DNA of 43,921 nucleotides from contig CDMY01000605.1 in NCBI GenBank assembly GCA_001179505.1, forward strand, positions 1 through 43,921, written 5' to 3'. Positions 25,801 through 43,693 of the stretch are shown piece after piece. This DNA is from Vitrella brassicaformis CCMP3155. Taxonomy: Eukaryota; Protista; Chromerida. The position numbers and the translations under genes were made by a program. Position 1 is the first letter of the stretch. Every line of letters starts with the position of its first letter. The notes under the pieces are model-generated. The model saw only the letters and a program-made list of their open reading frames with translations. It made no database searches and was not told where the DNA came from.

Positions 25801-28800
25801 TTACAGTTCGAGAATGTCTGCAGGCGATAGCCGACCATCGGAGGGAGAATTCGGTGCCGATGGCGACAGCGGCTTTCTCGGCAATGTGATCGTGTCTGCA
25901 ATAGACAATCGACCCATTTCATTTCATTGCGTGTGTGTGTGTGTCTGCCTTCTCGTACTCGCGTCCTGGGGTGCCGTAGGAGGGGGATTTGGTGTGACTG
26001 GTCGGGATGCGCCTGTCAGGGCGACGAGAACCTATAGCAAATGACACAAATGCGACATAGGTGACAAAGGCCGACATCTTTCCTGCGCATCAAGTGTCAA
26101 CCTGCTGGGCCGTCGGTCGCCTGTTGGGGTCTTTCTCGAAGCACATCTGAGGCACGAGCACATTTCGATCAGCGCAGGAGTCTTCTTGAGGCCTCTGCAA
26201 GTACCAGAATGATCTGTCGCACGTGTGGAGGGAACAGCTTGCCAGTGGGAACCTCAGGCTGTCACATGCAAGAGAAACGCTGATCGAATATGTACATGGG
26301 TACATGCATACCTTGACTCCTTGACCATGCAATCTCATCGCCTCCGTATGAGCTGCCTCCGGACTCAGCGACCCCAACTCAGCAAACGGCCTCTTTCCTG
26401 TAGAACGAAGGCGCGAAAGGACGCGGTGAGCAGCAAGACAGCAGCTTACCGCCAAGTATCTCCACCAAAACGCATGCCAGCGCCCATATGTCGGCTGCAA
26501 ATGATATTGGGTTGTCTGCAAAGGCCGATCAGAAAGAATACGAGGACAAATGGTCAGGTACGGCGCCTCACTCCTGTCATAGGTCTCGGGTGCCATGAAG
26601 CCATGTCTTCCTAGGCCTGTGAAAGCACACATAGATTTGTTTCTATGTGCCCGCAATATCTCTCCTGCTCTCACCGTGAGTGACCGATTTGCTCGTGCTC
26701 AGCAGGATTCTCGCGAGGCCAAAGTTGGTGATCTGAGAGTAACTTGTAAAGATTGCTAGTACCGGGGCCTGTCTGTTCACTTTACCTTGATGCTACCTCC
26801 GGCATCGACCTGAGTAAAGAGACAGCAGGACCGAGTGGTGGCCAAAGCTCACGGCTGAAGACAAGTCGCGTGGCTTACGAGTATGTTGCTTGGTTTGAGG
26901 TCGCGATGGATGACCTTGTGTGCGTGAAGGGCAACAATGCCCTCGCAAATCTGACCACAGACAGGGCGCCGAGACTCCTTGCACTGTAATCTCAACTGAG
27001 TATGATTGTGCCGTTGCGATATACCTGCACGGCCAGTTTCTGGCGGATGCTGTCGTCAAGACGCCCGTCTTTAGCCAGCCGTTCGATGTACTTGTGCACG
27101 GGGCCACCGGTACACAGCTCTGACAGATACAAGGGCAGAGAGAAAGGGGCATTACCGAACCTGCGCATTTCTACAGTGCGTACCTGTGACGATTATTGGC
27201 TTCCCGTCCTGCTCAGCCAGCCCATGGAGCTTGATCAAACGAGGATGCTTGGCGCGGAGAACGTGACTGAGTAGCAAAACTTCCTTCTGCGCTTCCTTCA
27301 TCGATGATTCGTCTGCACATACGACCCATTGTGCACGCTGTGTGAGTTCTCGCCCCACAGGTCCTCCACAAGCACTCACCAGCATCTTGGCTGCCACAGA
27401 CAAGCCCTTAGGTTTCCACCTGGCCTTAAACACAGTCCCTCTTCCACCCGAGCCTGTTTGACCAGAGACATACACGAAGCCATCTGTCAAGTACGCCACC
27501 GACTCCTGCGTCGCATACCGAGAACACCGCCAAACCCGGACACTTCGAGCTCATCTGCCTTGATGTAGTTTAAGACCTGGTCATCCATACTGAAACTAGT
27601 CGTCGCGCCTACACCACATATCCCACAACACATTCACACGACACGCAACATGAGCACAAGCACACCGCCTCCTCCCTCGTCTGTGTGTGTTTTGTCGACA
27701 TGTTCGTACCTTTCGCAGCGGCGCCAGTGGGCGACAGGATGCTCCTGGCTAGCTTGCTCCTGGCCAAGTTGATCCTCTGCTCCTCGATGCGCTCCTGCTC
27801 TGCACTGAGGACCTTGATACGATACATGTCGTTCTGCCGCTGGTCGCCGTCGAAGCCGCCGAGGATGTGCATGTACCCCCGGTGCATGACGGCCCGGTGC
27901 CACGTGCGGCCAGACGGCACGTCGCCGTGCGTCTCCAACTGCGTCCAGGTGCGCGCCTGGCAGTCGAACACGTGGATATCTGTGTGGAGCAGGTAGGTAG
28001 AGAGGGAAAGAAGACACAACAAAGCAACATGTGTTGTGTGGTGTGGTGTGGTGTGCGTGTTTGCATGTGTGGTGTTTGGCTGGGTTCGTGCCGGCGTATC
28101 GCGTATGTGTCTCGTCGACGCCGCCGAAGACGAACATCTTGGTCCCACCGATCACAGCAGAATGCCTGCACGGCACACATGCGCACCACACACAGATACA
28201 CGATGGTTTCTGGGGTATGTTGTGGTGTGGTGTGGTGGGTGGGTGGGTGGGTGGGTGCCTGTATCTGGATTTGGGTGCGCTTCCCCTGGGCTCCACCTTG
28301 ATCCACTCGTTGGTGCCAAACACATACTCATACAAATCCGATAACGTGTTCTGCCCGTTCCAACCGCCAAATACATACCTGCACACACACCCATCACACA
28401 CACACACATACGAACAAATACAATGGCACACCACTCTTTCCACCCACCCACCCCCGCCCACACACACACACACACACACACACACTACTAAGCTTACATG
28501 CCATTCTCGTAGACGACGGCCGTGTGCCCGAATCGGTTTTCAGGCGGGTTCTGCGCTGACCCGTTCGCCAGCCACCTCTTGCTCTCGCCCGCTAGGCTCA
28601 GCACACCCACATCGTTCAACCGGTTGGAGCCATCAAACCCACCGAAGATGTAGGCAGTGGTGCCGTAGAGCACCATGCTGTGGTCACTGCGGTGGGCGGG
28701 CGGCTCCCCGATGGGCTTGATGGGCGCCCATCGGCAGCGGGCGATGTCAAACTCGTGCACGTCGTTGAAGTACTCGCCGCCCTTCCCGGTAAACCCGCCG

Positions 28801-29183
28801 AAGAAGTACAGCTTGCCCTCGTATGCGATGCCCTGACAGTTGGACCGGGCATTGGGCGGGCGGGAGGGGCCGGAGTCGTCCGCCACCAACTGCCACAGAC
28901 TGTTCTCTGCCCAGGTGAAGGAATGGCAACACACACACACACACACACACAAACACACACACACAGAGAGAGAGAGAGAGAGAGAGAGAACGTGAGAGAG
29001 AGAGAGTCATGCTTTCCTCTCAGCGACTTCACCGATATTGAAGGCGTAGAGATCATTTTGGCGTGCCGTCTTGTCGGTGCCGCCGAACAGGTACAAAACG
29101 TCCTCATAGAGGACCACGGCATGCCCCGAGCGGGGCAAGTAGACGTCGCCGCTGGTCTGAATTTGCTCCCACTGGCACTCCAT
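25801..29183 (-). CDS. Kelch-repeat (6 blades, LZTR1-like) + TKL kinase-like domain fusion with DFG->NFG (kinase cassette C)
   Basis: ATG at 29183 (MECQWEQIQ). Six R..H......Y.FGG blades are followed by SPTGAAAK|GATTSFSMDDQVLNYIKADELEVSGFGGVLG|SGGRGTVFKARW, VAAK, HRDLKPSN, ITNFG, MAPE, DIWAL and CFEKDPNRRPT, ending LSPADILEL* (TAA at 25801). One intron (27313-27379) has a phase problem. Confidence 0.85.
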
Positions 29184-42900: not shown

Positions 42901-43693
42901 GACACCATTTTCTTGCTCTCCAAGTCACATCTGTTACCAACCTACACGCACATACACATACACACAAGAAAGACCGTACGTGTGGTTGTGCGTGTGTTGG
43001 GAGGCAGCCTCTTACCAGCAATCTGTTGGCGTTGTCATCGGTGATTTCTGCAATCCACTTCTTCACGTTCAGGAAACTCTCCTTATTCGTCACGTCATAC
43101 ACTATGATGAAGCCTGCACGCACCGACAACACACACGCACACTTCTGTCTCTCTGTAAGTCTGCATGGCGACTGGCTGACTGCCTTTGTAATAGCGCAAA
43201 TGGAGCCCATATTGTCGCCCTGTCTGTCTGCATATTGACTAGCGGGTGTCTTCACCATGAGCGCTTCTGTAGTAGGATGCGGCGATGGAGCGGTTTCGCT
43301 CCCGCCCCGCGGTATCCCATATTTCGAGCTTGACGATTTTGCTGTCCACGTCGATAGTCCTGTACCTGACCTCAAGGCCAATAGTCGGTATGAAACTGTA
43401 AACAGCCACGCCACCAGATCTGGCAAGATCCATTATGTGTGCGCGCATGTGTGGTGATCTGGTGGTACCTGTCAGTGTATGTATCTTCCGTGAACCTCTG
43501 GAAGAGACAGGACTTGCCCACGCCGCTGTCTCCGATCAGCAACACCTTGAACAGATAGTCACTTCCGTACAAAGACACAAACACACCATCACACACAACA
43601 CAGAGAGGAAGCAAGATGCAAGCAGGCGCACCACACAGAGCACAGCAATCAGCAATGTGGTCCGTCAGTGTTCGTTTACTCTTCAGAACTCAT
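39919..43693 (-). pseudogene. Degenerate Rab1 + TKL kinase + FG-repeat tail fusion (kinase cassette B); one 1-nt deletion gives a premature TGA
   Basis: ATG at 43693 (MSSED|[17 protein letters not shown]). The Rab part has DTAGR and NRCD and lacks G5. Kinase exons are collinear with copy A (HRDLKPAN, DFG). GAGCTG-GTGGATTGA (A has GAGCTGAGTGGATTG) gives a stop at 41773-41775. Downstream exons remain open, encode LFG/FG/IFG-rich sequence and end RRKKVRVKRPQKG* (39919). This would be an intact CDS if the indel is a sequencing error. Confidence 0.8.

Follow-up and report, generated by a model that had tools for sequence, protein, structure and literature searches.

Varied accessory domains are familiar among TKL-group kinases. 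The described systems closest to the genes considered here are the ROCO/LRRK proteins, in which a Roc GTPase, a COR domain and a TKL kinase follow one another in a single chain, and RIPK4/ANKK1, in which the kinase comes first and is followed by ankyrin repeats. Individual end-modules recall the small GTPase Rab1/Ypt1 and the phenylalanine-glycine (FG) nucleoporins of GLFG/SLFG type. Chromerids are free-living photosynthetic relatives of apicomplexan parasites, and here we describe a set of TKL-type kinase genes from the chromerid Vitrella brassicaformis CCMP3155. The window, meaning the whole stretch of DNA analyzed, is the entire contig CDMY01000605.1 (43,921 bp, assembly GCA_001179505.1). 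It encodes three genes, A, B and C, all located on the minus strand and all built around a common cassette, a TKL-type kinase plus tail, whose exon pattern they share. Two further members, D and E, were found on contig CDMY01000549.1. An earlier interpretation of the window, made from its letters alone and here called the sequence-only reading, had proposed one cassette with different end-modules. The five genes bear this out and display four or five architectures, namely Rab-kinase (A), decayed Rab-kinase plus FG tail (B), Kelch-kinase (C) and two kinases with C-terminal ankyrin repeats (D and E). A is the most unusual member, a COR-less Rab1-kinase.

We consider it likely, for the explanation as a whole, that A to E represent a Vitrella-specific TKL-type kinase subfamily of at least five genes with one ancestral exon-intron pattern, and that this small family arose through duplication, terminal fusions that each happened once, and gene conversion. 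The genes themselves are already present in public annotation as unnamed products. No relevant literature was found on the Vitrella kinome, Rab-kinase fusions, chromerid TKL expansions or these genes. The additions made here are genes D and E, the single old Rab fusion, the mosaic nature of the copies and the ratios of non-synonymous to synonymous divergence (dN/dS).

A common kinase cassette in five Vitrella genes

Self-BLASTN of the window aligned A with B at 87% identity across 1313 nucleotides (nt) (36761-38056 and 41581-42874, E=0), B with C at 76% identity across 448 nt (E 3e-86) and A with C at 68% identity across 797 nt (E 3e-67), similarity that far exceeds chance. Exon models with GT-AG or GC-AG introns were built by eye from three-frame displays, and those of C and A equal the deposited proteins CEM25889.1 (679 residues) and CEM25894.1 (561 residues), residue for residue. 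The kinase exons measure 68, 124, 95, 72, 82, 45, 66, 89, 54, 45 and 73 nt in A, 68, 124, 95, 72, 82, 45, 66, 88, 54, 45 and 73 nt in B, and 84, 129, 95, 72, (24+58), 45, 66, 86, 54, 45 and 73 nt in C. Three departures from the common pattern were found: a slid intron in C, giving exons of 84 and 129 nt instead of 68 and 124 nt and phase 1 instead of 0; an extra 53-nt intron, also in C; and an exon 13 of 88 nt in B. The shared exon pattern and near-identical stretches proposed in the sequence-only reading were thus recovered both by self-BLASTN and in the exon models, with the motifs that it quoted present and aligned, NTITLP.KP included. The intron positions and phases that it took to be shared are mostly so, the slid intron of other phase and the extra intron of C being the exceptions.

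The window does not hold the only copies, a case that the same reading had allowed for. D (CEM22044.1) has a short N-terminus, the cassette with all tail motifs and C-terminal ankyrin repeats. E, located 7 kb further along the same contig and modeled by homology, is a 925-residue kinase that also carries C-terminal ankyrin repeats. Exon lengths in D and E are the same as in A to C, and all five genes have the cassette marks HELEF ... PTGKLFPP ... RPVTPNP ... NTITLP. The Gly-rich loop, the VAxK lysine, the αC glutamate, the HRD motif and the DFG aspartate are all kept in A, B, D and E. E begins MPTPIYDFIQEHELEF, and the Rab-kinase junction of A sits at exactly that start. Since the native start of E coincides with the N-terminal boundary of the cassette, this boundary is simply the start of an unfused member. 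The kinase-first arrangement of D and E corresponds to that of RIPK4/ANKK1, a likeness of architecture only. Outside Vitrella, the kinase finds matches of about 30-35% identity, and ankyrin repeats are missing from A, B and C.

The ankyrin-calpain gene located between A and C in the window has a copy on CDMY01000549.1, placed between D and E and oriented opposite to them. The window copy (29296-34168, plus strand) is colinear with positions 15720-20012 of CDMY01000549.1 at 67-74% DNA identity. Because the same neighbor is found at both loci in colinear form, the two loci represent paralogous blocks.

An N-lobe HMMER profile searched against 1.84 billion cluster representatives returned no more than two clusters below 1e-10, both from Vitrella. 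In word-based protein searches, all hits above ~35% identity were Vitrella proteins, and no further fusion of a Rab to a kinase appeared. The same protein searches did not return the annotated B or E proteins, so that the family size given here is a lower bound. A kinase-only tree of the core region, with plant and ankyrin-kinase outgroups, placed A to E in one clade (100/99), resolved internally into (D,E) and (C,(A,B)). An attempt to infer an ancestral ankyrin tail from the outgroups failed, the nearest ankyrin kinases having their repeats N-terminal to the kinase.

Gene A is a COR-less Rab1-kinase

Gene A (CEM25894.1, 36214-39241, minus strand) consists of 19 exons and is defined by exon model, database protein and spliced transcript. 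The encoded protein contains a Rab1-type GTPase, a linker of ~45 residues, a TKL-type kinase, a serine/proline (S/P) tail and an acidic end. Pfam recognizes Ras plus Pkinase only, which agrees with the intact Rab1 that the sequence-only reading had placed at this N-terminus. The Rab part, spread over five short exons, retains intact G1-G5 and RabF-type motifs, ETSAK among them. Rab typing was carried out with residues 1-90 of the transcript-derived A protein as query in a search of PDB sequences, and the C-terminal half of the A Rab was found to be nearest to Rab1A (E 4.5e-36), followed by Rab1B, Ypt1 and Rab8. Intact G1-G5 motifs together with nearest similarity to Rab1 place the domain in the Rab1 subfamily. 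It differs from Rab1/Ypt1 in that the C-terminal cysteine prenylation motif (CC/CXC) is absent, the hypervariable tail instead running on into the kinase within the same exon.

This junction exon (38009-38213, minus strand) is a continuous open reading frame. It encodes the last Rab helix, 33 cysteine-free residues left over from the hypervariable tail and the first kinase residues, and it is 100% identical in transcript nt 221-429. The location of the Rab-kinase junction inside a single exon points to a read-through or deletion fusion of neighboring genes and not to intron-mediated exon shuffling, the process invoked in the sequence-only reading.

The nearest solved structures to the A kinase in the PDB sequence search are CTR1 and LRRK2, which assigns it to the TKL group. 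HRDLKxxN and a PK_Tyr_Ser-Thr match are present. A thus resembles ROCO/LRRK proteins in having a Rab-like small GTPase N-terminal to a TKL kinase in one chain, and LRRK2 is among the best solved-structure matches of its kinase. By analogy, the nucleotide state of the GTPase likely controls or targets the kinase in both. However, A differs from ROCO/LRRK proteins in several respects: COR was not detected by Pfam, the ~45-residue linker is too short to hold one, so that the Roc-COR arrangement is missing, there are no LRR, ankyrin or WD40 repeats, and the GTPase is of Rab1 type instead of Roc. We hypothesize that A is an expressed single-chain GTPase-kinase in which the non-prenylated Rab1 domain, depending on its bound nucleotide, regulates or targets the kinase in cis.

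Expression of A is documented by a 1740-nt contig from a JGI metatranscriptome record, which is 100% identical to the window over exons 4-19 plus the 3' untranslated region (UTR), save for a patch in exons 10-11. The contig spans from the Rab part to the stop codon, the Rab-kinase junction being present in RNA, and its introns are spliced as modeled, except for one 75-nt intron that is retained in frame. This retained intron 14 (36817-36891, minus strand) has no stop and adds 25 residues in the kinase C-lobe. The transcript further shows that the true C-terminus of A is acidic and is reached after one further intron, while the hydrophobic open reading frame belongs to the 3' UTR. Of the differing C-termini described in the sequence-only reading, the short one of C, the acidic one of A and the FG one of B therefore stand, and the hydrophobic alternative for A falls away. 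A Pfam search of the A tail returned no match.

The divergent patch of the A transcript (nt 716-810, compared with window positions 37300-37478, minus strand) contains 10 substitutions in ~100 nt, and the rest of the 1.64 kb has none. Over 54 nt the patch equals C, and no reference copy matches it exactly; its source is either a gene-conversion tract carried by another allele or isolate or an extra copy missing from the assembly. A database protein, P0002 (443 residues), combines the Rab and N-lobe of A with the C-lobe of C and was considered as a fourth, recombinant gene. It was rejected as a transcript-assembly chimera: P0002 is identical to the A transcript up to nt ~771 and then follows C, and the 54-nt stretch shared by the A transcript and C explains the switch. 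As P0002 (JGI 3300017297, Ga0186270_107939) is the representative of a 50% protein cluster, it could mislead domain-architecture surveys.

The fusions might also be artefacts of mis-assembly or of gene-model merging between adjacent genes, a possibility that draws on the two gaps in the contig, on the chimeric P0002 and on the difference between the annotated B model (649 residues) and the exon model used here. We regard it as highly improbable. The Rab-kinase junctions of A and B lie inside single exons, the A transcript runs from Rab to stop at 100% identity, exon 13 of B was seen in independent sequencing runs and the P0002 chimera is accounted for by the shared 54 nt. The assembly gap at 35267-35566, a run of N, falls in noncoding intergenic DNA, where the calpain gene (stop at 34168, plus strand) and A (stop at 36214, minus strand) converge with their 3' ends, and CA microsatellites flank it. 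None of the exons of A, B and C crosses it, and the 3' UTR of the A transcript maps without interruption down to 35975, short of the gap. The stop-to-stop spacing of 2046 nt is similar to that in the paralogous block on CDMY01000549.1 (about 1770 nt), giving no sign that a large piece is missing. The misassembly that the sequence-only reading had named as an alternative is thus not indicated at the A junction or at this gap; the Kelch-kinase junction of C is a prediction from the annotation.

The copies are mosaics under purifying selection

The extent of exchange between the copies was assessed from intron identities. As background, 132 non-homologous intron pairs gave an identity of 0.56 ± 0.05 with a maximum of 0.69. 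Between A and B, all introns of the Rab part (0.45-0.65) and the last three introns of the 3' part (0.51-0.60) are at background, while introns 1-9, from the kinase start to exon 15, range from 0.78 to 0.98. Elevated values also connect B and C at introns 10 and 11 (0.84 and 0.71), A and E at intron 12 (0.87) and A and C at intron 1 (0.85). Over the core shared by A (36761-38056) and B (41581-42874, both minus strand), exons are 84-100% and introns 78-98% identical. The 3' part of the B cassette (41207-41642, minus strand), unlike that of A, resembles C (25817-26264) at 76-87% identity including introns. Synonymous divergence (dS) follows the same segments: for A and B it is 0.24 in the core, 0.47 in the Rab part and 1.3 in the 3' part, for B and C it is 0.38 in the 3' part and 0.69 in the core. 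The A/B kinase core is homogenized, the 3' end of B is C-like and the 3' end of A is E-like. Intron identities, segment-wise dS and the patch in the A transcript together indicate repeated ectopic exchange between family members, and to this extent the shuffling proposed in the sequence-only reading is supported.

A and B have identical Rab exon structures and intron positions. These shared positions and the Rab dS of 0.47 imply that both Rab parts derive from one old fusion that was later duplicated. Pairwise dN/dS lies between 0.2 and 0.34 for every pair, with a value of 0.33 when the Rab parts of A and B are compared, which indicates purifying and not diversifying selection.

These results bear on the proposal that the locus is an active exon-shuffling hotspot, repeatedly capturing sensor, decoy or localization modules on one kinase in the manner of plant integrated-domain immune kinases. 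Like plant kinase fusions and integrated-domain immune receptors, the family combines one kinase scaffold with varied extra domains and includes catalytically disabled members, a resemblance of analogy only. Five genes with four or five architectures would fit such a hotspot, as would the ongoing sequence exchange that keeps the kinase core uniform and the disabled motifs of two members, the Rab of B and the NFG of C, as decoys might have. However, each partner was acquired once, both Rab copies being of one origin, the Rab junction lies within an exon and not at an intron, no defense-related domain was found by Pfam, and dN/dS values of 0.2-0.34 provide no pairwise sign of diversifying selection; in the last point and in the lack of repeated capture the family differs from the plant receptors. 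We therefore consider the hotspot improbable. The claim that the locus keeps bolting on modules is not borne out, as the Rab copies go back to one old fusion and every other partner appears once. The housekeeping genes named as donors of the modules are candidates at most, and nothing links the family to immunity as had been suggested.

Gene C, a predicted fusion of a Kelch propeller to a probable pseudokinase

Gene C (CEM25889.1, 25801-29183, minus strand) has 19 exons. Its product starts with a Kelch β-propeller, encoded by five exons together with a coiled linker, continues with the kinase cassette and stops at a short S/P-rich end soon after NTITLPRKP. Pfam matches Kelch_KLHDC2_KLHL20_DRC7 (3e-76) and Kelch_1 in five stretches, covering residues 3-320 and identifying a propeller, and places Pkinase at residues 370-626. 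No BTB domain is present. The Kelch N-terminus claimed in the sequence-only reading is accordingly recovered, with the correction that the LZTR1-like label is no more specific than generic Kelch propeller. Two introns of the Kelch part, with donors at 28257-28258 and 28090-28091 (minus strand), are of GC-AG type and are used by the annotated model.

The Kelch/linker part is joined to the kinase through a phase 1 intron (27609-27709, minus strand), the sole module junction in the window that depends on splicing. The junction is supported by annotation, canonical GT-AG splice sites and compatible phases and should thus be regarded as predicted. Exons 10-19 are spliced in a transcript contig (JGI Ga0186270_107939) at 100% identity, the extra intron included. 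This C-only GT-AG intron of 53 nt (26733-26785, minus strand), seen in the exon tables and spliced out in RNA, divides an 82-nt exon that the other four genes keep whole. On the tree ((D,E),(C,(A,B))), a recent intron gain is the simplest explanation, and we consider a gain likely.

In the alignment of A to E, and in the RNA-derived P0002, the DFG motif of C reads NFG (ITNFG, asparagine codon at 26724-26726, minus strand). C thus does not have the motif set of an active kinase, the Mg-binding DFG aspartate being replaced, and is probably a pseudokinase or an atypical kinase. The Kelch propeller may recruit binding partners, with the probably inactive kinase serving as a pseudokinase or scaffold.

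Gene B, a mosaic member with a disabled Rab and a predicted FG tail

Gene B (39919-43693, minus strand; annotated as 43448-39919 with Ras plus Pkinase) contains a decayed Rab and the kinase, followed by an FG-repeat tail with a basic motif at its end. Except for one frameshift, each of the 22 exons is open, and the kinase motifs are intact. The Rab part is disabled, in agreement with the sequence-only reading: compared with Rab1/Ypt1, the switch II glutamine of G3 is changed to arginine, NKCD of G4 reads NRCD and G5 is deleted, so that the intact motif set of a Rab1 is lost. A deletion of 306 nt of genomic sequence, comprising 59 + 157 coding nt (216) plus a 90-nt intron, has removed G5, the last helix and the linker while keeping the frame. 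As a result, ...KELA meets VEPHELVF inside one exon (42827-42941, minus strand) and G4 is joined straight to the kinase start (…KELAVEPHELVF…). The donor of exon 7 (42507-42508, minus strand) is GC in B, where A and C have GT.

Exon 13 of B (41720-41807, minus strand) is 88 nt long, compared to 89 nt in A and 86 nt in C, D and E in exon models and alignment. A 1-nt deletion between 41782 and 41781 causes a frameshift, followed by a stop. All six sampled 31-mers of this exon were found in DNA runs of the source sample and in runs of other studies, and the same six also in three marine-sediment metagenomes from 2025 and in one RNA run. The occurrence of these words in independent DNA runs and in an RNA run indicates that the deletion is real and the exon transcribed. 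The three 2025 sediment runs, holding all sampled words, also point to the presence of Vitrella or a near-identical relative in those samples. The deletion itself creates a GT donor (CTG|GTGGAT), and a model spliced from this donor either to the next exon or to an AG lying 20 nt beyond would have an open frame of 751 or 765 residues.

The FG tail (39919-41240, minus strand) comprises six exons. It begins in the exon carrying NTITLPGKP and runs over five more canonical exons to the basic end. It contains 13 FG (17 F[GA]) motifs in about 300 residues, consists of 58% G/S/A/T and 7% charged residues, and ends RRKKVRVKRPQKG. The FG motifs, the uncharged G/S/T/A-rich spacers and the basic end are shared with FG nucleoporins of GLFG/SLFG type, in composition only, while the tail differs from them in being attached to a kinase and in having neither a pore-anchoring domain nor a Nucleoporin_FG hit. 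A Pfam search (E <= 0.01) of the FG open reading frames returned no match of any kind. The nearest ESM-Atlas clusters are FG nucleoporins (score 0.85), a language-model lead only, and the nucleoporin origin claimed for this tail in the sequence-only reading thus comes down to composition. A search for FG remnants downstream of the other genes (A, C, D and E) gave none.

The last calpain exon has an orphan copy (39431-39609, plus strand), located 310 nt downstream of the B stop and 85% identical to 33988-34166. The presence of this copy 3' of B points to a local tandem duplication as the origin of A and B, one which carried the calpain end along. The Rab exons of B are 79-89% identical to those of A even as the Rab introns are at background, which argues that constraint acted on B during most of its past. 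B is best viewed as a mosaic copy that retains the remnant of a dead GTPase; transcribed yet frameshifted, it would be either a young pseudogene or rescued by the new splice donor.

Only A may be functional, with B and C as decaying duplicates whose odd termini would be accidents of decay, namely read-through into low-complexity DNA in one case and a fortuitous splice to a neighboring Kelch gene in the other. The real and transcribed frameshift of B, its GC donor and its Rab without G5 and with altered G3 and G4 are in line with this, as is the missing DFG aspartate of C. Moreover, the collections searched contained no protein derived from a transcript of B or from one covering the 5' half of C. 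Nevertheless, we consider decay of both genes unlikely, if deserving of attention. The 22 exons of B are open but for one base, its six FG exons have canonical splice sites and its large deletion is in frame, C has 19 open exons and is seen in RNA with its 3' half spliced, and pairs with B or C have dN/dS of 0.23-0.34. The retention of Rab exon identity between B and A over introns at background likewise speaks against long-standing decay.

Other features of the locus

The contig is eukaryotic in character, with short GT-AG introns, some GC-AG introns and CA microsatellites. The ankyrin-repeat plus calpain region between C and A (29296-34168, plus strand), which carries Pfam marks for both and forms part of the duplicated block, is annotated as two genes of 568 and 472 residues. 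It may be a single ankyrin-calpain gene. Its paralogue on CDMY01000549.1 (15396-19976) is annotated as three fragments of 283, 171 and 319 residues, and that copy may be decaying. Another TKL-type kinase gene lies at 21821-24763 (plus strand), convergent 3'-to-3' with C. Annotated with 787 residues and Pkinase only, it was considered as a further cassette-family member and rejected, tBLASTN giving no match at 1e-3. A 92-nt stretch downstream of C (25503-25594) is 74% identical to one downstream of A (34514-34605); the pair could stem from a 3' flank once common to both genes, or from a small repeat.

Assembly and significance of the family

Combining these observations, we propose the following history for the family. 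A whole block, consisting of a kinase gene, the ankyrin-calpain gene on the opposite strand and a second kinase gene, would have been duplicated, as the anatomy of the two loci suggests. A later local tandem duplication would have taken the 3' end of the calpain gene along with a kinase gene. Each end-module may have been added in one event. Before the split of A and B, a Rab1-type gene was presumably fused in frame to the native kinase start, either by read-through or by deletion involving an upstream Rab1 paralogue, with loss of the prenylation cysteines, stop codon and spacer and with the hypervariable tail becoming the linker. A Kelch propeller gene would have become linked to C by way of an intron. 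Ankyrin repeats follow the tail in D and E, and B alone has an apparent FG-rich low-complexity tail. Ectopic gene conversion would then have moved pieces between copies, such that the catalytic core evolves in concert while the ends stay different.

Several points weigh against this history or limit its detail. Conversion tracts testify to exchange between copies and give a direction for none of them, and conversion may have produced the grouping by locus that the tree shows. The ankyrin tail of D and E may be ancestral or gained, either being possible. Scans of transcript and metagenome contigs with the spliced exon 5/exon 6 sequence and with the end of exon 5 found no RNA for the Kelch-kinase junction of C. 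The mRNA of B could be frameshifted or rescued by the new donor. The searches used here miss Vitrella proteins, so that the family may be larger. Finally, the functions proposed for all members are predictions from sequence.

A more far-reaching interpretation would have A act as a minimal COR-less Rab1-kinase switch, its genuine Rab1 domain gating or targeting the TKL kinase directly, and, at the same time, the family form a fast-evolving sensor array in which a core kept uniform by conversion is combined with exchanged recognition modules of Rab, dead-Rab, Kelch, ankyrin and FG type. We consider this combination quite unlikely; if true, the array would be a protist counterpart of integrated-domain signaling kinases.

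The significance of duplication, one-off fusion and conversion at this locus is limited by the small size of the family and its restriction to one species, making it a tidy rather than revolutionary example of gene fusion plus gene conversion. Within these bounds, the locus shows at intron resolution how a core can be kept uniform by conversion while terminal modules diverge via one-off fusions. In addition, the direct Rab1-kinase fusion without COR in gene A would offer a simple natural system for addressing how a small GTPase controls a TKL kinase in cis, the core question of the LRRK2/ROCO field.

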